A stretch of 64,000 nt of DNA from Oopsacas minuta. Its lineage: Eukaryota; Animalia; Porifera. Below, in pieces: positions 1,720-63,110 of the stretch. Under the pieces are notes generated by a model, which was not told the origin of the DNA, ran no database searches, and saw only the letters and a list, made by a program, of their open reading frames with translations. The stretch lies in assembly GCA_024704765.1 (NCBI GenBank), contig JAKMXF010000088.1, forward strand, positions 682,001-746,000, given 5' to 3'. The stretch's first letter is position 1, and every line of letters starts with the position of its first letter. The translations under genes were made by a program, and so were the position numbers.

Positions 1720-2090
1720 TTGTATTTATTTTTCTAATTTATCTCTTTTAAATAATACTCACTCATATTACATATTTGAGGGATTCATGGTAACTAGGCT
1801 GTTGCCATCTTATAAACAAATAGATGCAGTCCTTGCTAGAACTCTGACATGAACTGACCTGGTCATTTAGTTTTGCCATTAACACAGTATGAACTCCAAA
1901 ATTGTGGCATAAACCACGTGGGCACAAATCCTACAAAACTGGGTTTTAGCTCAATATTAATCGTAAAATCATAGGTCTTATTATGACATCAACTGGGACG
2001 TGTCCTCACCCTATGCTTAATTAATTGATGCACAGTTTGTCGCTATTTTTAGTATCATTAATAAATATACATAGAATTGGTACCAACTAA

Positions 2091-2618: not shown

Positions 2619-2712
2619 ATATTAGTAAATACAATATTTTATAGAAACGATTATTTTACTTAAGTTTAACGTGATTTAATGAATACCTTATGGTTGATTT
2701 ATTAATTCTAGC

Positions 2713-3948: not shown

Positions 3949-4245
3949 TTATTATTCTCATATTTTTTCATTTTCTTTCCTCATACTATTATTTAGAGAT
4001 TCATGGTTACCAAAGAGTACAATAGGTATGCTGTGTTAATGTTGTGGTTATAAACCTAGGCTCCATGGACTCAATTGTTGTCCACAAAGGACCCCAGTGT
4101 GTTGAAATTGGTATAAGGGGAACGCGTGTGTAAAGATAGGAACCCGTTTACCAAAATTGGATTTCAGAGTTGCATTGGGAGGTGAGGGGGCAATTTGCAC
4201 TATTATAGCCTTTTAACACCTTGAATCATAACAGCATTATAAACA

Positions 4246-24900: not shown

Positions 24901-27853
24901 TCCATCATCTCGATCAACAGAAAAGGTAAATATTGTATGTCAACAACAACAAAGCATATAATATAATGTGTGTTAATAGGGGCATTTATCAAGACCATGT
25001 AGTGCTGAAAGCCCTTCAAAAAGTCAAGCTGGAACTATAGCTAAATTAGGTTCCGGTATAACACCAAGGAATAGATCAGCTTCTTGTAATGATGTCCCAA
25101 CTGCTCATCCTCCTCCTATACATATGGAGACACACCCTACACTCAGGAGAAAACAGGATAATGTAAACAAATATATAAACAAACAATAGAGCAACAAAAT
25201 ATATTTCCAAAAATTGCAATCTGTAATTTCTTTCAATACACAAATAAATGTGTCAAAATATGTATAATCACTTTAGTTTGTATCAAAGTCTCCAAACGAC
25301 ACCAACAAGCGTTCGAAATTCTTCTCACTTCCTGGGTTCAGACAGTTATCAAATCGTTTCTCAAAATCTCAAGAAAATGTTGGAGATAAAATATTAAGAA
25401 ATGAAAAGGGTAATAGAATCAAGAGAGGAGGTTCTCTTACCCTCGATATGGAGACGCAATCTGTGACAGAGAGCCTTTCTAGTACACACAGGTGATACAT
25501 TCGTCAATACTTGCTTATATTGAAGTGTCAAATTGTACAAATATGGTCCCAAACCTTCATAGTAACAAATATTCCATCGGCTATATCAAAGTGATTATCA
25601 CGGTCTCTTAAGCTTTGATATAACTACAGTCTGAACAAATGGAATTCAACATTTTCCATAAAATCATTACTTGGAATAATAGGGTCCACCGGTTAATCGA
25701 GCTAACACCTTAGTTCTGGTCAAGATACTCTGTTCCTGAAATGACCATATTAATCAGAGCTACCTTATTAACACTTCATTTTTGATATAGGACAAGAGAT
25801 TTCAATTTTGAATCATTATCACATTCACAAGGTAAGTTGTAAATACAATAAAACTTCCGCTAGTTAACACCTCTCGTATGTGTTAACATTTTGGGTGGTC
25901 TCCAGGGTGTTCACTTACTGAAGGTTTATTGTATTAATATTTTAAGGGAATTTATTATTTATTTTAACAGACAAAAATTGTTTTAAGTTCAGAATTTCTA
26001 TTTATACTTTTCAGGTTTTCCACCACGCAGTGCTTCTGTCTGCTCTGACCAATCAACTGCTAGCAAAACGAGCGCGCATTCAACATTATCTTTGGATAGG
26101 AAATCAAAAAAGCGAAGAGATCATGTTAAGAATTTTTTCACACCTGAGAAAGAGACAAATATAATTCCATCTAAAAATTCTGTGAAAACAAATCCTGTAG
26201 GAATAAACAAGTTAAGCGGGATAAGGTGTCAATTAAATGGTCCAATTCAAGTGTCACAAAATAAAGAACCAATCAAACAACAGCCTTCTCCTTCTTCTAA
26301 GTCTATAAATACACATTCCACGCATACTAGTGTCGTTGCTAGGAAACCGCCTACCCCTACTAGACATATTATAGACACGGTTCAATATGAAAACGAACAG
26401 ACAAGAGTTAGCCAATCAGATTCAAGCTTTAAGGCGCCAATTCCAACTAAGCGAGAGAGAAATGGCGCGTTAAATTCTGATGGATTAGCCAATGAGATTG
26501 AAGATAGAAAATATAATAAAAAGAGAGATGATAGATCAGCTGTTTCATCGGAACACACTGATAATCAAGTGAGTATAACAGGAGGATACACACCTATCCC
26601 GTGTTCCCATGGGGACCATTGACTTAATTAGTACTTGGTTCCAATTCCATCTCAGAAGTAATAATTAATGTTTTGTATTCTAGAAAGGAACAGATCTGAC
26701 ACAACAAATGAATGGAAATATACAAGTGAGAGGAGAGGAGAATATATTTGTTGATATTTACTTGTTTGTTTGTTTATTGATACTATATTTAGAATAAAAG
26801 CAGACATAAAAAGAATCCATTTTATGAGAATGAAGCTTTGTTATACAACAGATTCAGGTTTATTTATTTAATTATTAACACACTTGTGTATGATTATTCG
26901 AGTAATATTGGGAGGACTCTGAAGCTTGAGGTCCTGACAAAAATGGACCTCTTGTCCCCTCTCTCACAGGACATGAGTACCTTAAGATAATCCCTTCGGT
27001 GTCTGTTATTTACTGTATTGTATTTAGTTGGTTTCACGGAGATCTGACCCGAGAAGATGCAGAAAACCTTCTAAAGTTTTGTGGAAATGTTGGAAGTTTT
27101 CTGATACGAAATAGTAAGAAACATTCCAAACACCTCTGTCTATCTCTAAGGTATTCTATTACAGCTGTACGATTCAGATGTGACACAATTTTGTCACCTT
27201 TCGGAGGACACAAAAGTGGCACAGCCACTAACCGACACATTATTTGTATCTAATTAGGTATTCTGATCGGATTAGACACTTTAAAATTGATAGAAGTAAT
27301 TATGGATATTCAATTGACGGATTAGAGGTTAGGATTGTTTGTTTGTTTATTTGTTTGTTTGTTTGTTTGTTTGTTTGATTGTTTGTTTGTTTGTTTGTTT
27401 GTTTGTTTGTTTATTTGTTTGTTTGATTGTTTATTTGTTTGTTTGATTGTTTATTTGTTTGTTTGATAGTTTATTTGTTTATTTGTTTGTTTGATTGTTT
27501 ATTTGTTTGTTTGTTTATTTGTTTGTTTGATTGTTTATTTGTTTGTTTGATAGTTTATTTGTTTATTTGTTTGTTTGTTTGTTTGTTTGTTTGTTTGTTT
27601 GTTTGTTTGATTGTTTGTTTGTTTGTTTATTTGCTGTTTATATTGTTTAGGGATGTTATACGAATTTGAATAAACTTGTTGAAGTATTTATAACTTGGAA
27701 TGATAACATGGTAAAACCACTTGACAAAGGTAAACAAACAAACAAACAAACAAAACAAATAAATAATGTTTATTACTATTTGTTTATTAGTTATACAGAA
27801 ACAAACAAGAGATATAACACCTCGTACACCACCTCTAGAAACTGGTAAGTAAT
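22000..27853 (+). CDS. PH + SH2 signalling adaptor (STAP/SH3BP2-like architecture), about 15 exons
   Basis: Exon 22000-22056 (ILYEGYLEKKEKK) joins 24048 (WEAFWVRL..RLYFY), 24250 and 24417 (ERTSWM) to form a PH domain; SH2 WFHGDLTREDAENLL..GSFLIRNS..LCLSLR at 27028 onward. Ends ETGK* at 27853, or splices from the GTAAGT donor at 27845 to a 20-nt exon at 29457-29476. Confidence 0.8.
22265..23540 (-). CDS. SYCP3: Synaptonemal complex protein 3 (Cor1/Xlr), 3 exons, nested antisense in intron 1 of the PH-SH2 gene
   Basis: ELGGDFSDIF..KTMSAKKKKYEIYSK and C-terminal EIKNLQKKII..QEGIANFKRSLESML match remembered SYCP3 blocks; exons 23540-23145, about 22889-22797, 22516-22265. Confidence 0.85.
22676..22770 (+). 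repeat. Dispersed GC-rich repeat (family D); related copies about 31225-31305 and 36124-36185
   Basis: Shared motif string GAGG.TAGG..TTCAT...TGACC..G.ACA.GCCCC.G.G.GTGA.GT in introns of SYCP3 and IQANK1-like and in the HEN1 spacer. Confidence 0.55.
23770..24013 (+). mobile_element. MITE family C copy (about 245 bp)
   Basis: Near-identical to 30677-30947, 47439-47712 (minus) and 54426-54646; right TIR truncated. Confidence 0.85.
24480..24786 (+). repeat. Degenerate (GTTT)n microsatellite field in an intron
   Basis: Directly visible GTTT/ATTT/GTTA array. Confidence 0.95.
27335..27635 (+). repeat. Degenerate (GTTT)n microsatellite field in an intron
   Basis: Directly visible; explains spurious ORF 27427-27669. 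Confidence 0.95.
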
Positions 27854-27959
27854 AATTGTTTGTTATTTGAATATTTCTTAGAAAAATATTTAATATTTGG
27901 AATGTTTAATTGTGGATAGTAAACAATAACAAATAACGTACAAACACACAAACACATAA

Positions 27960-29195
27960 TTAGAAGAATTGTAGCCTGTGAGAATCCTTCCTGTCCACTA
28001 CAACAATTCGACCCTCCTCGTTAATGTCAATGCCATAAGGAGAGCAGAATTCTCCAGGTCCTTCCCCTTCATGTCCAATAATAGTTACAATATGTCCCTC
28101 TATAGAGATTACTTTAATGTTATTAGCTCCGTAGTTACTAACTATAATGTTCTGGTGTCTGTCTAGACAGATATACCTAGGATCAGTGAGTAATTCCTGT
28201 GACGCAATCACTTGAAAGAAGTTCCCATCTCTTGAAAATAATTGTATCAGGTAGTCACACTTCCCAAACAGGACTACGAATAGAGATGGAGTTGTTCTTA
28301 GGCCAAAGAGCCTTGTGTCTTGTGTTATGTGAGGAGAGTTAAGTGCTGTTTCCTTGATTTTACTCAAATCCTCCAAACTGTAATGAGATATGTGATTAAC
28401 TTTACATATTCCTTCATACAGTGTATCTACGTCAGTTGTAATACAGGATATGGAATCACTTGGTTCTATTTGACACATTATTTCCCCTGACACCTTATCC
28501 AGCTTGAGGATATTATCTGGGAGGAAACATATAACAAACAGCTGATGAGGTGTTACAGCTATATCAGTAGGATGAGACATTCCTTGTGCCTTAATGGTCC
28601 TCTTATAAGAGCCATCTTTACAGAACACCTGAATTCTATGAACCGACCAATCAGACACATAAATATCTCCGTTATCTCTATCTATTGAGAGATCACTAGG
28701 ATTGAATATCTCATCACTTCCAATTCCTCCATTGACACCAGACCACACTGGTTTGTGTCTGTTCACGTAGGACACTCCCTCAACCACGCGACACAATCCT
28801 CCCATGCCACCTTCCAACCACTCTTCATGCCATTCGAGCCACACAGATGGTACCCGGTCACCAATCGCCTCCAGTACTTGTATTTCATTGTCTAGTCCTC
28901 TTAACATATTTTCTAAAAGAACATTCAACTCATTATGTACCAAATTTTGTGTAACCTCAGCTTGTGTGATTAGCAGCTGATCCAATTTGTTATGTCTGTC
29001 CACCACTTTAGCCTCTGCCATACGGACCACTTCATCTAGTTGTACCTCCATTTCTAGATGTTTCTCCTGTAGCACACGGAAATAGAACTCAAATCTGGCT
29101 CGGAGTTCCTCTTTCGCCATCAACACCTCTCTCCTAAGCCTTTCCAACTCTCTAGCTGTCTCTTCATGCATACCAGCGCCAAATTCAGTTGCCAT
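27960..29195 (-). CDS. Coiled-coil + NHL protein, subfamily A copy 2, intronless
   Basis: 411 aa from the ATG at 29195 (MATEFG); gap-free alignment to 2713-3948. Confidence 0.88.
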   Translation of the reverse strand: MATEFGAGMHEETARELERLRREVLMAKEELRARFEFYFRVLQEKHLEMEVQLDEVVRMAEAKVVDRHNKLDQLLITQAEVTQNLVHNELNVLLENMLRGLDNEIQVLEAIGDRVPSVWLEWHEEWLEGGMGGLCRVVEGVSYVNRHKPVWSGVNGGIGSDEIFNPSDLSIDRDNGDIYVSDWSVHRIQVFCKDGSYKRTIKAQGMSHPTDIAVTPHQLFVICFLPDNILKLDKVSGEIMCQIEPSDSISCITTDVDTLYEGICKVNHISHYSLEDLSKIKETALNSPHITQDTRLFGLRTTPSLFVVLFGKCDYLIQLFSRDGNFFQVIASQELLTDPRYICLDRHQNIIVSNYGANNIKVISIEGHIVTIIGHEGEGPGEFCSPYGIDINEEGRIVVVDRKDSHRLQFF

Positions 29196-29545
29196 GTTAC
29201 TCAAAATATTTATTGTAAGATAACACTAGTCACTATTCTTATACTATCTGGATACACCACAGAACAGACTGTAACGCTTACAAGTAGTCACTGATCTCTC
29301 TAACATACACTACACACTCTAACAACCAAATCATTCATAGATATGTTAACCACATTCCATCAGGTGCTGCATAGCAACAATACAATATGTTGTGAGGTTA
29401 ATTCAAAGGAAAATTACTTTATTCGAACATTTTTATCAAACCATTTATTTTTATAGAATTGATTGTAATCGATTAAATATAGCACTAAACAATGTTATGG
29501 GTAGTAAAATATATAAGTGATAGTTCCATATTATAGTTCCATATT

Positions 29546-33760: not shown

Positions 33761-36700
33761 ATGGATTACCATTTAAATTATCAACCAATTAGAATGCAGA
33801 GTTCGCATAGCAACGAAGATTTCCCTGAACTATGTATAGTTGGTTCCAGTTCAATATTGTACCAAGATGAAATGAAATACCTGGAATTTGAGCAAGGTCT
33901 CCATTTGATACCATGGATGGGTAACACCTCACTTTTAGTGGACAGATACGACGCGCGCGGTTTTCTCGACAATCAATCAAAATTCGGTTTGAAATCTAAT
34001 TTGAAATTCCGACCAAGTCAAGAGGAAATTGAACTTGAACAAAGGTGTGATGAAGAGCGGTATTTGGAACTAAATATGGAACTAAGTGAGATGGAAATTG
34101 GAACTGAAGAAGAGGAAAAAAGGAATTCAAGAATTTTTGCCCAAATTCCCTTCAACTATGAAACTGAAAAACGTACTGGAATCAATTATGAGAACCCTAG
34201 CAACGAAAAGGTGAGTTGGAATTTAGGCTTTGGTGCATATTTTTGAGGCAAGATTGAAGACAATACCTTGGATACAGAATTCAGCTGAGGAATGTGAGAT
34301 ATATAAGGTATTTGTTCAGGTTTTGTTATCAAAAAGTGAGTAACTTTCTTTCAAAAATTTTGATATTTTGATGTATATATTTTGTTTACTTGTTTACCTT
34401 GTTATTATAATTTCTAATTATTTAGTGTAACACCAAACAAGCAATGGAATATAAATAAATTCACACATTCTCTGTTCTTAAATATTCTTATTTATCTTCT
34501 AGAGACAAACAACTGTTGACAAACCTCTCAATGAAATTACAGACTTCACCCCATACATTCCTAAGCCAGAATTGCAAATTCCTGTAACTATGACAACGCC
34601 AGGAACAGAGAGAATGCATAATATAATAGTCAAAACGGCGCGTCATGTGGCAGAGAAAGGGAACCAACTGGAAATTGTTATTAAAATAAAACAACAATAC
34701 AATTCATCATTCGATTTTCTCAGTTTCGATCATTTTCTACATCCTTATTACAAACACATTAAAAACCTTGTGTTAAGTGGTTTTAAGTCACTTTTTGAGA
34801 CACAATTTGATGACAAGAATTCTACAGAAGGTTTGTATAATTGTACCACCTTTAACACCTATTGCTATGGGGCATTTCTGCACCCTCCCCTTGATAACAC
34901 GAATCAATTAAATCAAAAATATTCTAATAAAGTTATTACATAATAAGTTATACTTGTAGTTCCAGTTATACTTATAGTTCCAGTTATACTTATAGTTCTG
35001 GTTTGACAGGTGGCCTAGGCTCATCCGTTTTAAGCGGGAATTCCTTGCAAATAACTTCTCTATAAATTAGTTCCATATTGGAAGGAGATGGTTCCTGTTT
35101 GACAACATTTGTTGATTCGAGTTTCATAAACTGAATTTCTTTTGTCAGAATTGGAACCTCGCTTTTTTTTGGTTCTGGTTTGGATTTTGGATGTGTTGTT
35201 GAAGATTCAAGTGGAGAATCTGATTGGTCATCTTGTGTAGTAGGATTGTCCCAATCAATAGTATTATTGTTATTTACTTGAAGGTGTTTGTTAGGAATTT
35301 CTAATTTTAGAGAAAAGAAAGCTGCTTGAGAACAGTAGCCAACTTCCTCAAATCCTATTGGTGGTTCCCCAGCGCCATTATACTCCACTTGGTATGGAAA
35401 ATTGTGGCAGATGGCCTCGCACCAATTCATGAACTCTTCTCTGTTCCATTCGAACTTGTGGTCAGGGTGACGAAACCCAGAAAAGTCCTTGAAAAGAATA
35501 TTGAATTCTGAGTTCGGAGTTGTTATGAACACATATTTAGGCCTCAAGGTGCCAAAAATGGCAGTTGGCAATTGTGTCAATGTGTCCTCTTCTAGATGTT
35601 CTATCACCTCTATAAGCGACACAAATTCAACACCTTCTAGCCTCGGATCCCATTGAGTAAGAGAGCCACAATATAACCCAATTTTAAGGGGGGTAGCACG
35701 ATCAATATTGTGGACAGCTTTATGTGGTTTAGCCACATTTTGACACCTTTTGAGGGTGGGTTTATCAATATCAACACCTAATATTTCATGTAAATACGAG
35801 AAATTCTTTTCCCTTAAATGCCAAATAAATTTCCCCTCGGCACAGCCAAAATCCACCAATTTAAAAGGTGTGAACTTTTCTATATATTTAATCGCTAGAA
35901 AATATCTTTGTCTGAATAAAACAGGTCTGAAAATAACTCCAAACGAACTGTCCTCTCTTGTGCTCGCCTCTTTGAGAGATAAATTTTCTGTTACATTCTC
36001 TTGCGTTGCCATGGTAACGATGGTATTAGCCAATTTAGAAGCTAATTTTAGAAGATATAGATTCGTTATAAGCAACTTTACCCAAAGTGTGAAGTATTTA
36101 ATATTAATTCGGACGCCTAGGTACGAGGATAGGGTTCATTTGACCTCAGGACACGCCCCTGGGGTGAGGTGGGCAAATACCTAACCCCAGGACAACAATA
36201 AAACCTCTCAAACATAAATGACAACAAACAATACGGATAGTATCCATATTCAAGTAAATACATAGTAATACACTGGATATTGAATTGCATGCATTTATAT
36301 GCGAGTATGTGTATTACACATTGAATGTCAGTATAAGCAATTACATTCACTAAAACGTATAATGTTACTATGGCAACTCAATCGGACGATAAGAATTCAA
36401 CTTGTCAGCAAGCAGAAGATCCGAATGAAGTTAGGTCAAAGTTCCCAGAGCTGAATTTCCCAAATCATCGACCAGTAACTGATGATATACATTTTAATCC
36501 ACCTCTATACAAGCAGAGATACTCGCTAGGAATCGATTATGTCAAAAAATTCTGTCCTTCAAAAGTGGTTGATTTCGGATGTTCGGAGTGTAAATTTATG
36601 TGGGCAATACGGAACCAGAACTATGAATTTATCCGTGAGATTATTGGTGTCGATATTGATAAAGTTGTCCTAGAGACACACGATTGTGTCGCGAAGCCTG

Positions 36701-39700
36701 TCACGAGTGAATATTTGTTCAAACGTGCTACCCCCCTTAAAATTGGGTTATATTGTGGCTCTCTTACTCAATGGGATCCGAGGCTAGAAGGTGTTGAATT
36801 TGTGTCGCTTATAGAGGTGATAGAACATCTAGAAGAGGACACATTGACACAATTGCCAACTGCCATTTTTGGCACCTTGAGGCCTAAATATGTGTTCATA
36901 ACAACTCCGAACTCAGAATTCAATATTCTTTTCAAGAACTTTTCTGGGTTTCGTCACCCTGACCACAAGTTCGAATGGAACAGAGAAGAGTTCATGAATT
37001 GGTGCGAGGCCATCTGCCACAATTTTCCATACCAAGTGGAGTATAATGGCGCTGGGGAACCACCAATAGGATTTGAGGATGTTGGCTACTGTTCTCAAGC
37101 AGCTTTCTTTTCTCTAAAATTAGAAATTCCTAACAAACACCTTCAAGTAAATAACAACAATACTATTGATTGGGACAATCCTACTACACAAGATGACCAA
37201 TCAGATGCACCAATTGATGAACCAAGAGAATCAATATTTTCTCATTTGAAACTGGAACTAACGAATACTGAAGAGACACCAAATATTGAGACCGATATGG
37301 ATACAAACAACACCTCAGTAGAGGCGAATAATCCGAATACGGAACCAAGTAATATCAATACGGAACTAACTGACATCAATATGGAACCAAACTACGTCTA
37401 CAAGGAAATAATATGTAACGAATTTCCACTGCAAGATCCAAACCATACCCCAGAAAGACAGCTGTTACTAGAGTTAGAATATCATGCAATGCAAATAGCT
37501 AAAAATGAATGGAAAAAATTGGAGGAACAAGGTGTTAGAGAGGAGGACGTTTCTCAGCAAATTTATGAGTCCAATGGGACATATTTTGATGCGGGACAGC
37601 CCAAGGGGTATTTGACCTGCTATGTATCAATTTATGGACGGCTTATGTCATATCCACAGATAAAATTTTATGGTACATACGATGATATCGTGAATACGAT
37701 TACAACTCGACAGGATTACAAACTCAATATGGAACTTACTCATTATAAAGTGGAACTAATGGTTGAAGAACCTGGATATTCAGACGAAGTGGATTCAGAC
37801 GAATGTGACAATGACGAGTCAGTAAATAATGAAATTTGGGGGGACACTTTCCAAGAAGTGGTCCAAGAAAGGAACCACGTTAGTGTACCTGAGAGTTGGG
37901 ACGATTAGTCATGGGACACCCAATTAGTTTCTTGAAATTAGAATTGTTATTATTAAGTTATAAACCTACCATAATTTGAATCAATCTATTTTCTATCTAA
38001 TATACTTGCTATACTATTCAAATGTGACAAAATGCATGCCAATGGGAGTAAATTGTCGTCAGGGAAAGGTCGCGTCTCTCATTTCACGTATTCAGACTCT
38101 CAACTGACTTCTGATGATGAAAATAGAAGTGAAACTATGAATAGTTCCCTTGAGGTGGCGAGAGAAAGGAAATTACGTCAGGAGGCAGAGGCACAAAGTG
38201 TCCGGCTAGCGGGACTATTAGAAAAAGCAGTTACACAATTCGATCCACCTCGACACAACAACGACGCACAACACCAAATTATTAATGATTTGTCCGCCAA
38301 AGCAAATCAAATCGAGCAACACCTCCAAAATCTCCAAAATCGGAAAAATCCAAGTCACTTAATTTCCCCCAAAAAGGATGACAATAGGCATATTCAGGCA
38401 ACCAATGAAATTGAAGACAGGGTTATGGACTTAGAACAACAGCTGGAACGAATTGAAGAGGGGGCCAATCAAATCGCTGGCAACAACAGGCTTACACCCA
38501 AGAGATGGTCGTCACAAATGAGTTTAGATTCAGCAATGCGGAAAGTGGATTCAGGGCGACACAATTTGACACCTGATAAGGAAAATGGTAGGGTGGCAGG
38601 CTTGGAAATTGAACTCGAAACAACTCAACGAATGAAAGAGGATTTGAGAAATCAATTAGAACAAATGTTACGTTACGCCAAATCTTTGGAAACTGAATTA
38701 CGGACTAATAAATCCGATTTTGATAAATTGAGTTCTGACAGCGAACAATGCCAAATAGATCTGTCCATTGAAAGGCAAAAACTAGCTGAGGCAACTGCAC
38801 TTCTTAACCAGGTAAAAAATAATGCACATCGAATAAATTCGTACTCCAAAAGATTGGAAAATAAACTTTTAAGATCTCAAAACCAAATCCAAAAGTACGA
38901 GTTTGATAACGAAAAAAATTTCCGTGAAAATGGTAAAATGCGTGCAGAATTTGAGCGAAGACAATCGGAGAAAGATTTGAATATTCAGAAAGTTTTTAGC
39001 GATATATCGAGAGAAAATTCTGATTTAAAATACCAATTGGAAGATGAGAGGTCAAAATTACGATCATTGAGAGGGATCCAAGCAGAAATGGGAAATAAAT
39101 TCAGGCGTGAGATGGCACAACTCTCTGACACAAAAGAATTACTTATTCGTGAGAAAAACAGTTTTGAAAAGATGAATGAAGAATCAGGAAATCATTTGCA
39201 AGAAATTGAGGTAATGCAGGAAATAATAAACAAACAAACTATGGAGATTGACCAATTAAAAGATGACAATAAAGCCGTATTGCGGGCAACAGGAAGTGAG
39301 ATTGATATGTTGATGGATAGTTTCAGTTCCAAACACCAAATACCTCAATTTACAAGTGGTACAGTGCGGGGGTTGGAGAATGAACCACGTAGATGGATTG
39401 CAGATGTTTTAGCCAAGTTAAAATGGCTACAATCAGAAATGAGGACCACTTACAAATGCGACACATTTAACACCCCACAACACGAGTATTAAATAATATT
39501 ATATACACTGATACATTCCCATTAAATATTATATTAACATATTTTGAACTTTTTAGAATATCCACCCGCTCATACAAAGCCTCCACCGGTGTATCCAGGG
39601 CATATCCCGCCCCATGATGTATCTGCACTTAATATTCCTCAACTGATATCTGGTAATCAGGAACTTAATCTTATTCCATCTGGAACTAACTTGAATGGTG

Positions 39701-42700
39701 AGAAATGCCTGGAAATTTTGCCATATAAAGTATGGGAAAATTCATATTTATTCTATTTTTAGAACAAACAGCTGTTATTTCTAGTTCCAGTGAGGAGACA
39801 GAACTTCATCCTATCCTCAGAACAGGCGCCAGTTCTAAATTTACACCTATACCTAAACTCAAGGCAAAGAGGCGACAAAAAGCAAAGATATTTTTAGAAA
39901 AAATAAAAGGCGAATGTAAACCCGAAACAGCTGATTTTACGCGGGAAACCAATCAAATAGGCGGGAATGAAGTATATTATCAGGTCCTATTTTTAGCAAC
40001 ATATACACGAGCCATATTAGGGCTTAGCCAATCTGTGCCGACCATTGTACATTCACTTAATTACAGTGGCACTATTAATTGGAGGCACTAAGTATGAGTA
40101 TTGATAATATTTCAATGAGAAAGTAAAACTGGCTCAAATGTGTCGTTAGAATAGTTTTGGTATACACATATGTACCTTAGACTGTAACAGTCTATCTATC
40201 TGGAAAATTTCAGAATTCTAGGTATAAGAGTGTGACCAGGACACCGTCGATGGAGAAATAGGCAACAGTTCTAGAAATGTGCTAACTACAGTATTGTATA
40301 GTCCGCACAGTAAAAAGCATAAATATCTGTTTGCTTTGACCAACATACAAATGAGTGTGTGTTAGTCCAGTGACAAACAAAATTTGTGCGCATTTTGAAT
40401 AGCAACTCGAATGTTACAAGAACTATCTTCGATAACGCATAAGTTCACACCAAAATTCCTCAAACGAAATTAAAATTTTCATTCGAATTTTGTGGGTGAA
40501 TAATATGTGTTTATTAACCAATGGGTTTACAGGGATATGATGGATATATTCATATTACACCTCCACCTCCAGACATGCAACAGCTGATCGATAAAGTGGC
40601 ATTTCAAGTGGTATCATGCACAAATGAAAACATTGAGAAACAATTAAAAGAAGGAACAAATTCCATTTATGATTTTCTGTATCCTAGCAACCAATACTAT
40701 GAGTATTATCGTATAAAGAAAAGGCAATTCAAAGACAGTATTAAACCGATACAAAAGGTTGTGTGCTATTTTTAGAATTATCTAGAGTTTGTTATTTAAT
40801 TAATTTTAGAAAGATGAGAGAGTTGATTCTAATAAGAAACTGATTTCATTTTCCATTCAAAGCTCAATTGATAATATGCAACTGGAACAAAAGGTGTATC
40901 TTGGTGGCAATTCAAGTTCCAGTGAAGATGAAAGTCAAAACCAGAAATCTCAGGTACAACATTTATCCCACTTACCCTTAGGGTGTATAGAGATGCATCA
41001 TGGAAGATATAGACATCCGTCCGTTCGCAGTGTCCTGAGACATATACGAGACCGATTGACATCAAAATTACACATTTTTGAGGTAAAGGTCTACACCTCG
41101 GTATGAATTCTTTGTAAAGTGAATAATTTCACACCTTTGGGGTGGTTAAGTTAGGCCAATCAGTTGTAAAACACTTCCATTCTATTGTTTCTATTGAATT
41201 TGTGCTGGACACTTTTAGATATTTTATTTCTTAAAATAGACACTCAGCAAGAAAGTAGGTGTCAAAATGGAGCTTGAAGGTTTGTTAACATAAGTATGAA
41301 ATTAACAACAAGTATTTATAAAAAGATAGTTCATATTTTCACACCTTTTTCATAGAATATAGTTTGTAAGCAAATCTAAAATATGCAACAAATCATAAAG
41401 TAATATGAAACCAACAAATAGGTTCAGTTAAATAATAATTCTGTGTTACAATAATCTATTCTATCAATTGCAAATAATTGTATGGAAAATGACAACAAAA
41501 GCAAAAGTACTTCAAAAACGTGAAAGGGGGAAGAAATTCCTTTCATACATTCTGTCACGCACGAGTGACACTAGTCATGACCTGCCAATTGATCCAAACG
41601 AGGTCGAAACGTCAGACCGTGATAACTTAGGAAGAGCCATGAGTGTACCAATATTATCAATCGAAACCAAACGAAAGTTATCTGAGTCTAAATTGACTCA
41701 ATCCTTATCAAAATATGATTTAAACCCCGGGTCTGATTCGGAAAATGATCTGGACTTGGTGTCAATGAGTGGAGAAGCGAATTACATTGATTTGAATTCT
41801 ATACAAGACAAAGTCTTCAAGAGATCAATGCATATAACGAAGGCTATAGTTAAGAAATCTAAATGGGAGATCAGGGAATTCTCCGATTCAATTAAATTCC
41901 CTGAATTCGATGAGGATATAGTTTCAATTCCAAGTGAAGAAAATGTTAACTGTGATATCACAATGTCTGAAGAGACTACACAACTCGTTAGACGTAGGAT
42001 AAGAACTTCCGTTTCATTGACACGACCCTCAAAAATTCCTCCCCTCCCGAAGAGTGCTACTCAAAAAGACCGAAATCGAGTACGAATTATCCAAGAAATC
42101 ATTAATACTGAAATAGACTATATGAAGTGTCTTAGAAAACTAATACAACTTCGTGACACTATTCTAGCGAATGTGGCAATATATGGGCTCACAGAGGAAC
42201 AGGTTAATAGGATATTTGCATTCCTTCCTGATATCCTTGAGAGTCATGAACTATTCTATATGTCGATTAGTGGAAAAGTTCTACAAATATCACAGGATTT
42301 TGACATTAGAAATTTACAACTTGGACCTGATTGTATTTCTGCATTTTCTAAAGAGATTGTTGCTATTTCCTACTCAAAATATTCAGCACAGTTTTCATCA
42401 ACTATTGACACTATTATTCAGCATAAACTATCAAATGAACAGTTTTCGATTTGTCTCAGAAAATTCGAAGCTGAATCGAAGGAGAGTTTGAAAACGGCAC
42501 TGATAAGACCCATTCAAATATTTCCAAAATACGTACACATAATCTCTGAGCTTTTGAGATTCACTGATCCATCCCATCCGGACTACTGCTCGCTGTCTTA
42601 CGCACTGACAGGCCTGGAGAGTATGGCGATACGGTTAGGCGTCGTTCGTCACGAAGCAGAGCTAAAGGAACAGTTCTTACAACTACAATCTCGGATAATA

Positions 42701-45700
42701 TCAATCAGGAAAGATTTTTTCCGTTCCCAATCTCGGAAACTTTTAAGAATAGAACCCGCAATTAAACTATCACGGAAAGACGGTTATCTCAAGCCGAAAT
42801 TCCGTTATCTGTTCATATTTAACGATCATATTATGTGTCTACGGGGTGCTAAACGGACGTTCACGACAGATATGCTTACCCCGGGACCAGACGACTGTAC
42901 GACACTTTTAAGTCAATATTTTATCGAATGGTCTATACCCATCGATTCTATAGAAGTTAAAGTTAGAGAGAAATCCGAGAATCTAAGGATATTTAGAGAG
43001 ATTACGAAGATATTAAATGAAGAGCAGACACAGAAAAGACACGACGTCAATCTCCTACAAAAAATAGATTTACTTGTCACACAGTTATATGGTGTCTACC
43101 TCGGGTTTTCCAAGGCAAATGTCCAGAATTGTATCGCTCAATTGACACGTGAATTGCGGACAGATGAGATATACACTTCGCTACAGAGGTCACATGCTAT
43201 TGATGTTGAATTGATACGTGGTTCTAGGATCAAGCGTTACATATTTTACTTGGGAACCATAGAAACGATTAAGGAATTCGTACTAACATTCCATTACGCA
43301 AAAATGCGAGTTTTGCCTGAAAATTTTCAAGGTTGGTTGACTTTCGCAGTTGATTCGGATCATAAATTAAAATCTATCCAGAACTTCCCACTATTGGCAG
43401 ACACACAGGTGTACAACACAATGTATGCTAATTGTAGTGTGAACTGTGCAACGATTGTAGCAGATAGCTTCATATGGCTTTGCTGTGGTAATCTCAGACT
43501 TGGCATTATAATGATACTTAACACTTCGGGAAAATATATTGAAAAAATTGTGCAGTCGAAAGCATGTACTGAACGAATCTCAGTGATTCAATATATGCCC
43601 CCTTTCCAGGACGATAGGACAGAATGGATGTACCCTACGGTGTGGATGGGTACAGAAAACGGGACCCTATATGTATACGACGCTTCAGACCCTACTGTGA
43701 TAGACCTTAATGTCGAAACGGAGTGTCCCGATTCAGTTGTGTCAATGATATCTTTCGACGGTAGAATGTTCATTGGATTAGCTAATGGTGATTTAATGGT
43801 GTTTGATACAGATTCGAATGGTGAATGGGATGGCATATGTAGATGTAAATCACACCTTTCTGAGTATAGTATCATATCTATGCACTTGATCGATTCACAA
43901 CTTTGGTGTTTCAGTGGTAATAATGCGATATTATTCTCGCTCGTTGATTTACAAATTGAGGAAATTGTGTCCATCAATAACGAGCCGAATCAACATGTGA
44001 TGCTGACTGCTCCTTTTGGTCGTGCGATTTGGCTGTGTCTTAAACAGGAACCAGAACTATTATTGTTCCATATTAAGCATAAAGAAGTGCTGCAAACGAT
44101 TAGCCTAAATCGCTTTTTCAGACAACTGCGTAAAGAAGATTGGATAGGGACTGAGACAGTGAGGATAACTTCGTTATTGGCGACGCACGGGTCCCTCTGG
44201 GTTGGCACGTCAGAGGGAATTGTAGTTAATTATGAGTTACATGACGGCATCCCTGTATTCGTAGGACAGACCTCTATCTCCCAGGATTCCCACAACGAAA
44301 CTGCCAAACAGTTTCTGTATTTGAGTAAGAATATTGGTCAGAGGCAAACTCCGAAATATCAAAAGCCGAAACAACATAGTGAATTGCTGGAATTGGAAGA
44401 TGGGTATTGGACACAGCTACAACCTATGGAACCAAGCTCAAAGAGAACTTCGATAAACTCAACATTTGAGGCATCAAATATCTTACTAGATGGTAATCTG
44501 AAACTAACACGAGTTGGTTCCGATCCTGTGCAAAAAGATGAACCAATTTTACACGACTTTACTTCTCCACTCAACACGAAAAGATCGATTTCCCAAATAA
44601 ACTCATTTCCCCCCAAAAAATTCGAATTTCCAAAGAAGAGCGATCCATCCATCTACGATAATACATTTAAACCTAGTGAGGAGACAATCCATGAACAGAG
44701 TTTTGAGGACTCCGCGACATATGAACTGATACCAGCCCACCTTAATATGCCCCTCGAAAGACAGATTTCATCGTTTTCAGTGTCCTCTACTGAAGAACAA
44801 GGACCTAAATTTATACCTGGTGGCATGCCGCCACCCAAACCACCTCGTAAATCCTTTTCTGTTGGTAGCCTAACCGAGGCTGATATTGAAACTGGAACCA
44901 TACCTGAAACTACTGAAATAGAAGGGCCGAAAAAATCTAAAATTAGAACTGAGAATTCTTCTGACCTTGAAGTTCTACCTAGACAAATATCGACAGAATA
45001 CAGTCAATCCTCTCTTGAAGGTTCTAGCTCCCCCGTAACTGAAACTGAAACTAAACCCACAGTTCCTAATCCAGGTTCAAAATCTGTTCGTTACGTAAAA
45101 GCAACTTTTCTAAAGCCAATTAATAAAACTAAATTGGAACCATTAAGTTCTGTACCGGAACCAAACACAATAGACCTCTTAGACCCAGCGAATACAGAGA
45201 GAATATGGAATATGGTGGACGACATCAAAATAGATCCAGAGGAAAATTACCGCGACCCTTACGTCATCATGACGAGCCCACGAAAAGAAACTGGAACTAA
45301 CTTACCAGAACCTATTTCGCCACCATTTAGTACCAGACAAGAACAAGCAAAAACCGAATCAAATAGCATATCTAATATGACACCAAAAATTGGAGTGGGG
45401 GATTATTCTAAAGTGAAACGCAATATGGAACTAACTGATGATTTTGAACAGGTTCCGGCTATGACACCTCCCACTAAAAACGAATATTTTGTTCTGTCTA
45501 GCAAAGACCACCATTCTGTCACGAATCCTTCAAAACTCTCGAATATTGAATTAGCTAAAGTGTCAAATTCCTTTGCGTATGATTCGTTGCTAGAATCTAG
45601 ATCCCATAATTCTGGCGATTACACAAAACTCCAATCTCATGGAATTATTGACGATATTCCTGACTACGAAAAATTAATCCTAGACAGTAACGGAAGACCT

Positions 45701-46484
45701 ATATCATTGTCTCCCCAAAAGAAAATACCTATAAAACGTGTTAGTTCCGATTCAGAAGCAATTGGTTCCAATAACACAAAAGATAGATTAGGTGAAAGAG
45801 AGAGTGCGTGGATTGATATACATCTAGAAAGCTATTATGTTCTGTCGATTGGAAACGGGTATTTTGACTGGAGGGAGGTCAAAACAAAACCCACAAACGA
45901 AGGAAGCATGAACCCTACAGTGTTATTATGGCAACTGCCATGTTTATATAATGTGTAGAAATTATAACACCTTGTATTTATTGATTATTTAGTTTGCTTA
46001 GTTTAATAAAGAATAATCTTTAATTCGACATTGTTACACGTTTCTTAAACCCAAAAATTCCAAACTTTTGGATAGTCGTAAGGTGTTAACTATCTTATAG
46101 AAAACAGAGGTGATAAAGTTCATAACATTCGTAGAAAGAGAGTTTCAGAATTTATGCAAAAGTTACGTGACAAGAAATCAAAACAACAAACAAACAAACA
46201 ATCAGATATTTATGAACCAGAATACCCGACCGAAGTTGTGGAAAAGAAAATTTACCAAAAGGCTGCTATAAAATATCCTATTAATAACGGTAGATACTAT
46301 TGATTATTCATATTTTCACACCTTTGGGCGGTCTAACAATAGGAATGCGGTGCTAAACATGGGAAACTTAAAATACAAAAACACAAAATATTTTCAAACT
46401 TGTATTTATACTTTTCTAGATCAAGAAAGAAAGTCAGAAGAAAAGCATGAATCTGATTGGGTTACAAAATCTAAAAATAAATGA
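33761..46484 (+). CDS. SFSWAP: Suppressor-of-white-apricot splicing factor, 10 exons, about 620 aa; hosts four genes in introns 34831-39556 and 41280-46100
   Basis: DRY_EERY domain (HLIPWMG..LVDRYDARG), SURP1 (MHNIIVKTARHV..FDFL.FDHFLHPYY), SURP2 (PPPPDMQQLIDK..YEYY), then ISFSI and RRKRVSEFM. Exons 33761-34210, 34248-34307, 34503-34830, 39557-39697, 39763-39983, 40533-40757, 40810-40953, 41240-41279, 46101-46289 and 46420-46484 are phase-compatible. Exon 2 uses a weak GAG acceptor. Confidence 0.85.
34990..36012 (-). CDS. HENMT1: HEN1 small-RNA 2'-O-methyltransferase paralog a (340 aa), intronless, nested
   Basis: VDFGCAEG (SAM motif I), EVIEH, TPNSEFN, FRHPDHKFEW, YCSQAAFF; ATG at 36012 (the ORF track starts upstream at TTG). 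Confidence 0.92.
   Translation of the reverse strand: MATQENVTENLSLKEASTREDSSFGVIFRPVLFRQRYFLAIKYIEKFTPFKLVDFGCAEGKFIWHLREKNFSYLHEILGVDIDKPTLKRCQNVAKPHKAVHNIDRATPLKIGLYCGSLTQWDPRLEGVEFVSLIEVIEHLEEDTLTQLPTAIFGTLRPKYVFITTPNSEFNILFKDFSGFRHPDHKFEWNREEFMNWCEAICHNFPYQVEYNGAGEPPIGFEEVGYCSQAAFFSLKLEIPNKHLQVNNNNTIDWDNPTTQDDQSDSPLESSTTHPKSKPEPKKSEVPILTKEIQFMKLESTNVVKQEPSPSNMELIYREVICKEFPLKTDEPRPPVKPEL
36370..37908 (+). CDS. HENMT1: HEN1 small-RNA 2'-O-methyltransferase paralog b (512 aa), intronless, nested
   Basis: FNPPLYKQRY (FxPP), VDFGCSE, EVIEH, FRHPDHKFEW; long acidic C-terminal region. Confidence 0.94.
   Translation: MATQSDDKNSTCQQAEDPNEVRSKFPELNFPNHRPVTDDIHFNPPLYKQRYSLGIDYVKKFCPSKVVDFGCSECKFMWAIRNQNYEFIREIIGVDIDKVVLETHDCVAKPVTSEYLFKRATPLKIGLYCGSLTQWDPRLEGVEFVSLIEVIEHLEEDTLTQLPTAIFGTLRPKYVFITTPNSEFNILFKNFSGFRHPDHKFEWNREEFMNWCEAICHNFPYQVEYNGAGEPPIGFEDVGYCSQAAFFSLKLEIPNKHLQVNNNNTIDWDNPTTQDDQSDAPIDEPRESIFSHLKLELTNTEETPNIETDMDTNNTSVEANNPNTEPSNINTELTDINMEPNYVYKEIICNEFPLQDPNHTPERQLLLELEYHAMQIAKNEWKKLEEQGVREEDVSQQIYESNGTYFDAGQPKGYLTCYVSIYGRLMSYPQIKFYGTYDDIVNTITTRQDYKLNMELTHYKVELMVEEPGYSDEVDSDECDNDESVNNEIWGDTFQEVVQERNHVSVPESWDD
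38032..39492 (+). CDS. Coiled-coil protein, CEP128-like (short, 486 aa), intronless, nested same-strand
   Basis: Long heptad regions; GLENEPRRWIADVLAKLKWLQSEM resembles the CEP128 C-terminal motif PHRWLAESKTKLQWLCEEL (recalled). Confidence 0.55.
   Translation: MHANGSKLSSGKGRVSHFTYSDSQLTSDDENRSETMNSSLEVARERKLRQEAEAQSVRLAGLLEKAVTQFDPPRHNNDAQHQIINDLSAKANQIEQHLQNLQNRKNPSHLISPKKDDNRHIQATNEIEDRVMDLEQQLERIEEGANQIAGNNRLTPKRWSSQMSLDSAMRKVDSGRHNLTPDKENGRVAGLEIELETTQRMKEDLRNQLEQMLRYAKSLETELRTNKSDFDKLSSDSEQCQIDLSIERQKLAEATALLNQVKNNAHRINSYSKRLENKLLRSQNQIQKYEFDNEKNFRENGKMRAEFERRQSEKDLNIQKVFSDISRENSDLKYQLEDERSKLRSLRGIQAEMGNKFRREMAQLSDTKELLIREKNSFEKMNEESGNHLQEIEVMQEIINKQTMEIDQLKDDNKAVLRATGSEIDMLMDSFSSKHQIPQFTSGTVRGLENEPRRWIADVLAKLKWLQSEMRTTYKCDTFNTPQHEY
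41489..45958 (+). CDS. Rho GEF of the ARHGEF10/10L/17 family (DH-PH-beta-propeller), single 4.5-kb exon, nested same-strand
   Basis: DH domain (RVRIIQEIINTEIDYMKCL..LIRPIQIFPKY..LLRFTDPSHPDY), PH-like region, propeller (PTVWMGTENG; GSLWVGTSEG), terminal GNGYFDWR and LLWQLP; first in-frame ATG at 41489. Confidence 0.88.
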   Translation: MTTKAKVLQKRERGKKFLSYILSRTSDTSHDLPIDPNEVETSDRDNLGRAMSVPILSIETKRKLSESKLTQSLSKYDLNPGSDSENDLDLVSMSGEANYIDLNSIQDKVFKRSMHITKAIVKKSKWEIREFSDSIKFPEFDEDIVSIPSEENVNCDITMSEETTQLVRRRIRTSVSLTRPSKIPPLPKSATQKDRNRVRIIQEIINTEIDYMKCLRKLIQLRDTILANVAIYGLTEEQVNRIFAFLPDILESHELFYMSISGKVLQISQDFDIRNLQLGPDCISAFSKEIVAISYSKYSAQFSSTIDTIIQHKLSNEQFSICLRKFEAESKESLKTALIRPIQIFPKYVHIISELLRFTDPSHPDYCSLSYALTGLESMAIRLGVVRHEAELKEQFLQLQSRIISIRKDFFRSQSRKLLRIEPAIKLSRKDGYLKPKFRYLFIFNDHIMCLRGAKRTFTTDMLTPGPDDCTTLLSQYFIEWSIPIDSIEVKVREKSENLRIFREITKILNEEQTQKRHDVNLLQKIDLLVTQLYGVYLGFSKANVQNCIAQLTRELRTDEIYTSLQRSHAIDVELIRGSRIKRYIFYLGTIETIKEFVLTFHYAKMRVLPENFQGWLTFAVDSDHKLKSIQNFPLLADTQVYNTMYANCSVNCATIVADSFIWLCCGNLRLGIIMILNTSGKYIEKIVQSKACTERISVIQYMPPFQDDRTEWMYPTVWMGTENGTLYVYDASDPTVIDLNVETECPDSVVSMISFDGRMFIGLANGDLMVFDTDSNGEWDGICRCKSHLSEYSIISMHLIDSQLWCFSGNNAILFSLVDLQIEEIVSINNEPNQHVMLTAPFGRAIWLCLKQEPELLLFHIKHKEVLQTISLNRFFRQLRKEDWIGTETVRITSLLATHGSLWVGTSEGIVVNYELHDGIPVFVGQTSISQDSHNETAKQFLYLSKNIGQRQTPKYQKPKQHSELLELEDGYWTQLQPMEPSSKRTSINSTFEASNILLDGNLKLTRVGSDPVQKDEPILHDFTSPLNTKRSISQINSFPPKKFEFPKKSDPSIYDNTFKPSEETIHEQSFEDSATYELIPAHLNMPLERQISSFSVSSTEEQGPKFIPGGMPPPKPPRKSFSVGSLTEADIETGTIPETTEIEGPKKSKIRTENSSDLEVLPRQISTEYSQSSLEGSSSPVTETETKPTVPNPGSKSVRYVKATFLKPINKTKLEPLSSVPEPNTIDLLDPANTERIWNMVDDIKIDPEENYRDPYVIMTSPRKETGTNLPEPISPPFSTRQEQAKTESNSISNMTPKIGVGDYSKVKRNMELTDDFEQVPAMTPPTKNEYFVLSSKDHHSVTNPSKLSNIELAKVSNSFAYDSLLESRSHNSGDYTKLQSHGIIDDIPDYEKLILDSNGRPISLSPQKKIPIKRVSSDSEAIGSNNTKDRLGERESAWIDIHLESYYVLSIGNGYFDWREVKTKPTNEGSMNPTVLLWQLPCLYNV

Positions 46485-46790: not shown

Positions 46791-49700
46791 ATGAGTGGAG
46801 CTAAATTGTCCAGACCAGGGTCAACACAAAGTGGCCGGGGAAGTGGATCAGATATTCATGTCAGTTTAAAAGAAAATGAATTCTTCAAATCAGCTGATGA
46901 GGTTCTGTTAAAAAGCAAAGGAAAAACAGCTGGAGATGGACCAATCAGATTATTGGAAGATGTGAGTGCAAAGTATAAATAGAAATTTGTGTTTATTATT
47001 GTTTGTATTTACAGATTCTATTTTTGGACATTTCTCAACAACAGCTGATCGATATTTCACAAGTTTCACTTTGTTTACGACTAAAAATCTGCATTTTTCA
47101 TTCAAATTTCGTTGCTAACCTAGAACCACTTTCAAATGCTCCAAGTTTAAAAATAATCGACGCAAGTTCGAACCGAATTAAACACATTCCTGGAGAATTA
47201 TTTTGGAGTGGATTTACATACCTCGAGGTTTTATATCTCCATGACAACCCGATCGCTAATTTGGAATGTCTAGGCATGTTAACTGGAGCTCCAAAGTTGA
47301 GGATAGTCACATTGTACGATACACCTTTGAGCTTGAATAACAACTATAGGCATGTGGCTGTTAATTCAATGTGGCATTTGGAAGGAATAGATTTTTATTT
47401 GATTTCAGATGAAGAAATTATTCAGGTGAGTTGGCCCTCTGTTGTTAATGATAACTTGTTTCAGCTACACATTATGCCATCTAAGCATGTAGGGGAGCTG
47501 CTAGTTGCTATTTCATTATTTATGACATAATTATAGTGTCGAATTCATGGAAATATTCCAATGACTCTACTTCTAAATGTGTGAATTAATCGTGTTAAAG
47601 GAGGTCTGTTACTACTATTCACCCGTTAGTTAGTAAATATATTGTGTAGTTATTCATGTGACAGGGAAACTTGATGCAGGTGGTGGAGCTGAAACAAGTT
47701 TCCAACTAACAGTAGTCTTAAAATACTAATAAATGGGAAAATTTGGAAATATATAATTTGAGGTTTTCTTACAAAAAGCAGCTGTAATTATAATTAATTA
47801 TTTCCTTTGAATTAACCTCACAACATATTGTATTGTTGCTATGCAGCACCTGATGGAATGTGGTTAACATATCCATGAATGATTTGGTTGCTAGAGTGTG
47901 TAGTGTATGTTAGAGAGATCAGTGACTACCTGTAAGCGTTACAGTCTGTTCTGTGGTGTATCCAGATAGTATAAGAATAGTGACTAGTGTTATCTTACAA
48001 TAAATATTTTGAGTAACATGGCAACTGAATTTGGCGCTGGTATGCATGAAGAGACAGCTAGAGAGTTGGAAAGGCTTAGGAGAGAGGTGTTGATGGCGAA
48101 AGAGGAACTCCGAGCCAGATTTGAGTTCTATTTCCGTGTGCTACAGGAGAAACATCTAGAAATGGAGGTACAACTAGATGAAGTGGTCCGTGTGGCAGAG
48201 GCTAAAGTGGTGGACAGACATAACAAATTGGATCAGCTGCTAATCACACAAGCTGAGGTTACACAAAATTTGGTGCATAATGAGTTGAATGAAACTCTTG
48301 AAATTGTGTCAAGAGAGTTGTACCAGAAAATACAAGTACTGGAGGCGATTGGTGACCGGGTACCATCTGTGTGGCTCGAATGGCATGACGAGTGGTTGGA
48401 AGGTGGCATGGAAGGATTGTGTCGCGTGGTTGAGGGAGTGTCCTACGTGAACAGACACAAACCAGTGTGGTCTGGTGTCAATGAAAGAAGTGGAAGTGAT
48501 GAGATATTCAATCCTATTGATCTCTCAATAGATAGAGATAACGGAGATATTTATGTGTCTGATTATGACGTTCATAGAATTCAGGTGTTCTGTAAAGATG
48601 GCTCTTATAAGAGGACCATTAAGGCACAAGGAATGTCTTGTCCTTCTCGTATAGCTGTAACACCTCATCAGCTGTTTGTTATATGTTTCCTCTCAGATAA
48701 TATCCTCAAGCTGGATAAGGTGTCAGGGGAAATAATGTGTCAAATAGAAACAGATTATTCCATATCCTGTATTACAGCTGAGGTAGATACACTGTATGTA
48801 GGAATATTTAATATTAATCACATATCTCATTACAGTTTGGAGGATTTGAGTTTAATCAAGGAAACAGCACTTAACTCTCCTCACATAACACAAGACACAA
48901 GGCTCAGAGACCTGAGAACAACTCCATCTCTATTCGTAGTCCTGTTTAGGGAGTGTGACTATCTGATACAATTATTTTCAAGAGATGGGAACCTCTTTCA
49001 AGTGATTGCGTTACAGGAATTACTCACTGATCCTAACCGTATCTGTCTAGACAGACACCAGAATATTATAGTTAGTAACTACGGAGCTAATAACATTAAA
49101 GTAATCTCTATAGAGGGACATATTGTAACTACTATTGGACATGAAGGGAAAGGACCTGGAGAATTCTACTATCCTAAGGGCATTGACATTAACGAGGAGG
49201 GTCGAATTGTTGTAGTGGACAGGAAGGATTCTCACAAACTACAATTCTTCTAATTATGTATTTATTTTGTCGTTGAAATGATTATAACTAACAAAACAAA
49301 ATGTTTATTATATTTTCTATTACTTAACACGTAGACACCATTTTAACACATTGTATAACACCTCATAGATTGCAATACAAGTTTGAGATTATAATCTTAT
49401 AGGATTTGGATTTATACGACACACAATTCGCCGCAATGTCAGAATCCTATTTTCTACAACTCTATCAACCCTTTAATCCCGTATGGAGTTATGAAATAGC
49501 AAACAAACACATATCTAATCTCCTAACCGTTGTCAAGAGGAAAATGGCAAAATTATCACCTGTCTTAATTCTTCAAAGGTAATATTTGTTGAAAATAATC
49601 TTTCTGAATGTATTCATTTGAAATATGCTTAAAAGGTGTTAAAATATACATATATGATCTTTAGGCATGTCAGAGGTTGGTTGGTAAGAAAGAATATTCC

Positions 49701-62997: not shown

Positions 62998-63110
62998 GTA
63001 AGTATTTGTTGTTTGTTTGTTTGTTTGTTATGTATTTTAACTAAATATGAAAGATTGACAAAATGATTTTTTCATATACATTTATGATAAACAAACAACA
63101 AAGTAATTAA

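Follow-up and report, generated by a model that had tools for sequence, protein, structure and literature searches.

Probable long-lasting concerted evolution, limited to the catalytic core, of two inverted HEN1 genes nested in an SFSWAP intron of the sponge Oopsacas minuta

In this study we describe a 64,000-nucleotide stretch of the genome of the sponge Oopsacas minuta (contig JAKMXF010000088.1, positions 682,001 to 746,000), further called the window, in which two genes of the HEN1/HENMT1 family of small-RNA 2'-O-methyltransferases, HEN1-A and HEN1-B, lie head-to-head within an intron of the splicing regulator gene SFSWAP and form a nearly perfect inverted repeat by the parts that encode their catalytic cores. 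Comparison of the window with six related loci makes it quite probable that the repeat reflects concerted evolution which has lasted long, is limited to one domain and proceeds by gene conversion between the inverted paralogs. This would be an unusually clean case, with half of an enzyme domain kept identical for a very long time between two genes, and with a substrate-facing N-terminus and a targeting C-terminus left free to specialise. The comparison also reveals a conserved HEN1 duplication, consisting of a canonical copy and a copy without the targeting tail, in what is probably the glass-sponge lineage; this early-branching animal may, as a hint from the two copies, methylate its small RNAs by two separate routes. 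All positions given below are those of the window.

The inverted arms and the two HEN1 genes

The repeat search of the window returned two arms, 35207-35700 and 36724-37217 (494 nt, 99% complementary), separated by a gap of 1023 nt. When 35218-35700 was compared base by base with the reverse complement of 36724-37206, only three mismatches were left, at positions 35266, 35344 and 35487 (partners 37158, 37080 and 36937, respectively). According to BLASTP of HEN1-A against HEN1-B, the arm-encoded protein parts differ by one D/N and one E/D exchange only; with two amino-acid differences among three mismatches, the third mismatch is silent. A preliminary description of the stretch, made from the letters alone, had these details (483-nt inverted arms, three mismatches of the kinds named, a 1023-nt loop) right in every point that was checked. 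Arm 1 (35218..35700, minus strand, with a lower-identity extension to 35207) encodes about residues 105-265 of HEN1-A, and arm 2 (36724..37206, plus strand, with an extension to 37217) about residues 119-279 of HEN1-B. The 1023-nt loop (35701..36723) is made up of the diverged N-terminal coding parts of both genes and a 357-nt spacer. Both edges of the block are abrupt: identity falls to about 45-65% on the loop side, which is N-terminal in the proteins, and to about 30% at the outer, C-terminal edge. Over the ~80 aligned residues N-terminal of the block BLASTP gave about 50% protein identity, which confirms for the N-terminal parts the earlier statement that the sequence beside the block is only about half identical in protein.

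HEN1-A, the short paralog (34990..36012, minus strand, 340 aa), and HEN1-B, the long one (36370..37908, plus strand, 512 aa), are intact, intronless open reading frames (ORFs). Both proteins match models of S-adenosylmethionine (SAM)-dependent methyltransferases, Methyltransf_23 in the case of HEN1-A, and their nearest named relatives are animal small-RNA 2'-O-methyltransferases, with Capitella (44%) followed by many vertebrates; the best named relatives of HEN1-A taken alone are small RNA 2'-O-methyltransferases too. HEN1-B matched the solved structures of human HENMT1 (4xcx, E 2.4e-47; 5wy0, E 1.1e-43), and plant HEN1 3htx and bacterial Hen1 3jwh at about 1e-26. The structure matches span residues 37-247 of HEN1-B, and the catalytic motifs EVIEHL and DHKFEW are aligned in them. 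The SAM-binding motif I reads VDFGCAEGKF in HEN1-A and VDFGCSECKF in HEN1-B, and EVIEHLEED and FRHPDHKFEW are found in both copies and are invariant in alignment A1. Motif I, EVIEHL and the HPDHKFEW-type motif are shared with animal HEN1/HENMT1 proteins (human 4xcx and 5wy0, DmHen1/Pimet, zebrafish Hen1 and C. elegans HENN-1). Judged by domain, relative and HENMT1 structure matches, the arms encode the catalytic core in each of two HEN1/HENMT1 small-RNA 2'-O-methyltransferase genes, as the first reading had proposed.

Outside the core the two copies differ in character. HEN1-B retains the canonical FxPPLYxQRY at its N-terminus and, like animal Hen1 proteins, has a C-terminal region, which aligns with annelid and mollusc HENMT1. 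In HEN1-A the N-terminus is a variant one, and a short unrelated tail stands in place of the animal HEN1 C-terminal region. In N-terminal identity to outgroups HEN1-B is slightly closer (0.40 vs 0.33 for HEN1-A). Because of its canonical N-terminus and HENMT1-type C-terminus, both missing from its partner, HEN1-B looks like the conservative copy and HEN1-A like a derived one that lacks the targeting region. To our knowledge, most animals have been described with one HEN1 gene; unlike them, this sponge has two, one of which (HEN1-A) is without the C-terminal targeting region. In animal HEN1 this region is unnecessary for catalysis and is tied to PIWI contact and nuage localisation (PMC6158503, PMC3330095), and DmHen1 deprived of it was more active and less selective in vitro (PMC6158503). 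A limited full-text literature search found no published HEN1 duplicate pair like this one.

Searches for sequencing runs yielded four runs from one sample and one run from a relative, with no small-RNA library among them. Expression was followed in reads of the four runs from one sample, of which X1-X3 are DNA-type and X4 is RNA-type; all contigs are unstranded. X4 behaves as RNA-seq, having very uneven depth, TruSeq adaptor ends and splice joints. In X4 contigs the unique parts of HEN1-A were covered at a depth of 1039 (35721-35842) and 591 (34854-35141), and those of HEN1-B at about 456 (36014-36639) and 1173 (37335-37458), i.e. 20-60 times the neighbouring SFSWAP intron (40100-40499, depth 25). 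With a depth so far above the host intron level, each of the HEN1 genes has expression of its own.

Concerted evolution of the core in seven genomes

Protein search found both the short and the long HEN1 paralog in several ENA metagenome assemblies. Seven loci were compared, namely the window and loci L001-L006, with one sample per species (a further locus, L007, duplicates L006); the seven genomes probably belong to the glass-sponge lineage. The gene order in L001-L006 is DRY_EERY, Surp, HEN1-short on the opposite strand, HEN1-long, CEP128-like, (Surp2) and RhoGEF-WD40, and the ORFs of HEN1-A and HEN1-B are intact in all seven loci. An inverted repeat occupies the same place in each of the six related loci, with arms of 384-442 nt at 95-99% identity. 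The arms measure 438 nt (99%, loop of 1613 nt) in L001, 438 nt (97%, 1684 nt) in L002, 422 nt (99%, 1132 nt) in L003, 388 nt (95%, 900 nt) in L004, 442 nt (98%, 1691 nt) in L005 and 384 nt (96%, 925 nt) in L006.

In the codon alignment, one codon (R-x-TPL), shared by seven loci of seven, marks an abrupt rise of the nucleotide identity between paralogs, from 0.40-0.60 before it to 0.93-1.00 after it, while the identity between orthologs across the core is only 0.75-0.89. The 3' edge of the tract varies, from about residue 214 (L004, L006) to about residue 266 (the window). In the maximum likelihood (ML) tree of the N-terminal 88 codons, the B sequences form a clade apart from the A sequences (ultrafast bootstrap, UFboot, 100), and the groups (L004, L006) and {L001, L003, L005} recur within both paralog groups. 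In the ML tree of the core, A pairs with B inside every species (UFboot 96-100). Concerted evolution at orthologous loci, which had been suggested as a check on the first reading, is thus what the trees display: the core groups by species and the N-terminal parts by paralog.

Rates of synonymous (dS) and nonsynonymous (dN) change were obtained as Nei-Gojobori estimates. Between paralogs, the core has a dS of 0-0.17 and a dN of 0-0.026; between orthologs, the same core has a dS of 0.95-2.4 and a dN of 0.06-0.13. In the N-terminal part of the paralogs dS is saturated and dN amounts to 0.50-0.60. Since core dS is low between paralogs and high between orthologs, selection at the protein level cannot explain the identity. 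The core trees and dS values in seven loci uphold the earlier suggestion that gene conversion maintains the identity of the arms. The A/B split is shared by all seven genomes, so the duplication predates their common ancestor. The preliminary description had spoken of an old duplication with a recently homogenised core; the old duplication and the conversion-homogenised core hold across the seven genomes, but "recently" understates the case, the homogenisation being recurrent and ancient.

Concerted evolution of inverted or head-to-head paralogs, through conversion confined to a part of the gene, has been described for primate SIGLEC11/SIGLEC16 (PMC5701461), mammalian HSPA1A/B (PMC5865164), annelid Dlx inverted duplicates (PMC3199776), Caenorhabditis and Drosophila paralogs (PMC3966223, PMC3924832) and Y-chromosome palindromes (PMC3403216), and is already a well-documented kind of event. 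The HEN1 paralogs resemble these systems in being closely linked and inverted, in the sharp tract with identical silent sites which clusters by species, and in the old, diverged flanks and differing outside domains. They differ from them in that HEN1 is an enzyme of a small-RNA pathway, that the tract comprises only the catalytic half of a Rossmann-fold domain, that its 5' edge stays at one codon in seven genomes at an ortholog dS of about 1-2, and that an intron of a splicing regulator gene is host to the whole pair.

Proposed mechanism and alternative explanations

The following course of events would account for these observations. An ancient head-to-head duplication of HEN1/HENMT1 is contained in the SFSWAP intron. 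The N-terminal ~105 residues, including the region of the SAM-binding motif I, have diverged between the copies, and so have the C-terminal parts, B keeping the animal-type region and A ending in its short unrelated tail. Recurrent intrachromosomal conversion between the inverted arms would keep the core identical, synonymous sites included; this core, of about 130-160 codons, contains the EVIEHL and HPDHKFEW metal-binding motifs. The 5' edge of the tract would be frozen at one codon by divergence of the flank, which blocks extension of the heteroduplex, and by selection which keeps the N-termini distinct and the TPLKIGLY motif intact; flank divergence together with selection for distinct N-termini is, as we infer, the most likely cause of the fixed edge. 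The potential to form a 483-bp hairpin is most likely a by-product of concerted evolution. The sequences of the two copies further suggest a putative division of labour between HEN1-A and HEN1-B.

The GC content at third codon positions (GC3) of the core is 0.43-0.61 and exceeds that of the flanks in 14 of 14 genes, which fits GC-biased conversion. Several points weigh against conversion as proposed here. The GC3 excess could also come from codon usage in a conserved domain, and conversion is deduced from its outcome, the events not having been seen directly. The constancy of the 5' edge through dS > 1 is tighter than simple homology decay predicts, and some selection must be added for this reason, with the proteins or, conceivably, the RNA stem as its target. 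Moreover, the DNA-type runs X1-X3 share their sample with the assembly, which makes the cross-genome data the stronger argument against an artefact.

Selection on the RNA stem leads to the alternative that the hairpin has a role of its own. The SFSWAP pre-mRNA, or another read-through transcript, would fold into the stem and be diced, and the resulting small interfering RNAs (siRNAs), directed against both HEN1 mRNAs and methylated by HEN1, would make HEN1 dosage self-limiting; the stem would be maintained by selection as well as by conversion. The geometry for it is present. An X4 RNA contig joins 34828(+2) to 39555(+2) with 4726 nt skipped between GT and AG at a depth of 2090, the splice-site letters being AAG/GTTTGT at 34830/34831 and TTTTTAG/AATATCC at 39556/39557. 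It follows from this joint of exons 2 and 3 that HEN1-A, HEN1-B and the CEP128-like gene share one SFSWAP intron, and that a full-length SFSWAP pre-mRNA must carry both arms; their location within one SFSWAP intron, asserted in the first reading, is thereby established. That a single transcribed RNA carries both arms is deduced from this junction and from the position of the arms inside the intron, and the hairpin RNA is a predicted one. In minimum free energy (MFE) folds of either strand of 35150-37280, 487 of the 494 arm positions were paired with their partners, at a predicted arm-arm duplex energy of about -926 kcal/mol, which gives the host pre-mRNA the potential for a stem about 490 bp long. 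The stem is present, with its fixed edge, in seven genomes, and Drosophila hairpin RNA (hpRNA) loci are made of inverted copies of target genes (PMC10317233, PMC10292708).

Other evidence speaks against such a circuit. Unspliced SFSWAP RNA is scarce at steady state, with an X4 depth of 25 in the intron at 40100-40499 vs 3,600-5,800 in the exons, and the good expression of both HEN1 genes in this sample leaves room for partial silencing at best. The X4 RNA contigs contain no A-to-G or other changes in the arms, which is weak evidence, contigs of this kind dropping rare variants. Conversion alone fully predicts the conservation of the stem. The HEN1 arms are like Drosophila hpRNA loci (PMC10317233, PMC10292708) in being a long inverted repeat derived from possible targets and transcribable on one RNA; the latter are, however, non-coding, fast-evolving and defined by Dcr-2-dependent 21-nt reads, whereas both arms here are conserved, translated, working coding sequence. 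Taken together, it is improbable, though worth keeping in view, that HEN1 limits itself in this manner, and we hold it equally doubtful that the stem goes beyond a by-product in the form of a ~400-490 bp hairpin from the SFSWAP intron, diced and tuning HEN1 mRNA, with the siRNAs themselves being HEN1 substrates; a regulatory circuit is unlikely to be the reason for the existence of the repeat. The idea, at present based on geometry only, would be notable if true: an autoregulatory small-RNA loop formed from working genes, kept by conversion and shared across a sponge lineage.

The arms could also serve an invertible cassette, in which crossing-over between them flips the 1-kb loop, swapping N-termini and promoters, and gives four proteins from two genes. 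Inverted repeats of such size support inversion in many systems, and both orientations of the loop look alike in the read k-mer graph. Nevertheless, in all seven assemblies the A-type N-terminus goes with the short tail and the B-type with the long C-terminal region, so that these assemblies give no evidence of loop-inversion isomers, and no k-mer contig with a joint or a change of strand was reported at the arms. We consider this cassette very improbable.

As to the reality of the repeat, near-perfect repeats are a classic polishing artefact. The X1-X3 contigs stop 30 nt inside every arm edge (34700-35247, 35671-36753 and 37177 onward), and in X2 and X3 the arm is a single 483-nt contig at 170-177x vs 87-101x in the flanks; such breaks and an approximately twofold arm depth are what a k=31 graph yields if the inverted repeat truly has two copies. 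Assembly collapse or polishing, a very recent duplication and extreme purifying selection on protein, for which the typical look of such repeats and the shared sample of the DNA reads speak, are together scarcely credible, as seven independent assemblies each have the repeat with a species-specific core, all four junctions are present in read contigs, the flanks are synonymously saturated and grouped by paralog, and synonymous sites are identical between paralogs and diverged between orthologs. On the cross-species data and the read contigs we therefore rejected an assembly artefact, a recent duplication and protein constraint alone, and we retain concerted evolution by gene conversion as the probable explanation of the repeat.

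The collapsed arm contig of X2 and X3 reads A at 36894, in contrast to the G of both assembled arms (plus-strand C at 35530 in arm 1), and has the arm-1 letter at 36937. The difference at 36894 may be a heterozygous or arm-specific variant missing from the assembly. Six further differences separate X2 and X3 from X1 within 34927-40235.

Host gene, spacer and other features of the window

SFSWAP is encoded on the plus strand. Its exon region with the DRY_EERY domain lies at 33761..34246 (Pfam PF09750, E 9.8e-23) and exon 2, with the first Surp module (Pfam PF01805, E 1.1e-11), at 34572..34830, the 3' end alone being set by the splice joint. The intron of 4726 nt (34831..39556, GT..AG by the RNA joint, with the acceptor TTTTTAG at 39550-39556) is followed by exon 3 (39557..39698), which is based on the splice joint, loose contig ends in X4 and the sequence, and by the exon with the second Surp module (40530..40775), the translation of which matches the Surp(weak) ORF of L002 nearly residue for residue. 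The nested genes thus have Surp1 upstream and Surp2 downstream, and this order is repeated in L001-L006. The X4 depth at the Surp2 exon is 5759 vs 25 in the preceding intron. The Oopsacas genome paper gives 1.59 introns per gene, with introns averaging 341 bp; against this average, a 4.7-kb intron with three genes is atypical for the genome. A text search of that paper found no mention of Dicer, Piwi, Argonaute or nested genes.

The third nested gene (38032..39492, plus strand, identified as an ORF, with PF28367 CEP128 in its orthologs) encodes a CEP128-like coiled-coil protein and has an X4 depth of 14,000-39,600. It starts 123 nt past the stop codon of HEN1-B on the same strand, and RNA covers it some 10 times as deeply as HEN1-B (about 800-3,300), or more. 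The tandem spacing of the two genes, 60-188 nt, is kept in the related loci, with an overlap in L004. Given the close spacing and the higher depth, the promoter of the CEP128-like gene must lie within or just after HEN1-B. Behind the Surp2 exon, on the same strand, there is an intronless RhoGEF-PH-WD40 gene of 1496 aa (41468-45958).

The 357-nt spacer between the HEN1 start codons (36013..36369) presumably holds a divergent promoter and the 5' untranslated regions (UTRs). It is poorly conserved (47% mean column identity in a four-species alignment) and is 229-1046 nt long among the loci. That alignment shows little in the way of a conserved element except GT(T/C)ACT right before the ATG of HEN1-B, and with so little conservation no common promoter motif is claimed. 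A single unstranded RNA contig, 36014-36639, spans the whole spacer and the beginning of HEN1-B. HEN1-A and HEN1-B may accordingly have 5' UTRs that overlap in antisense, or the transcription start site of one may be located inside the other. At the opposite end of HEN1-A, the stop codon (34990-34992, minus strand) is located about 160 nt from the SFSWAP exon-2 donor, with an RNA contig at 34854-35141; the 3' UTR of HEN1-A almost abuts the host exon and may overlap it in antisense.

Two further repeats were noticed in the related loci. In L007, positions 1-325, at the very end of the contig, contain a palindrome of 159 nt (99%, 7-nt gap), and the HEN1-long ORF is truncated at the contig end to 427 aa vs 501 in L006; the palindrome is probably an assembly-end artefact. 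In L002, the most distant relative, a 41-nt, 80% inverted repeat (9687-9727 / 11230-11270) flanks HEN1-short and may represent the ends of a small mobile element.

Elsewhere in the window, genes with NHL repeats form inverted repeats of 92-95% identity situated 5-24 kb apart (27950-29412 / 47801-49263, 2709-3952 / 27956-29199 and 57336-58240 / 63096-64000) and a direct repeat of 300 nt at 97% (2709-3008 / 48014-48313); they are a young or converting family spread through the window. Two arrays of short tandem repeats with an 8/12-nt period (24426-24853 and 27222-27621), about 2.7 kb apart, were returned as one direct-repeat family.

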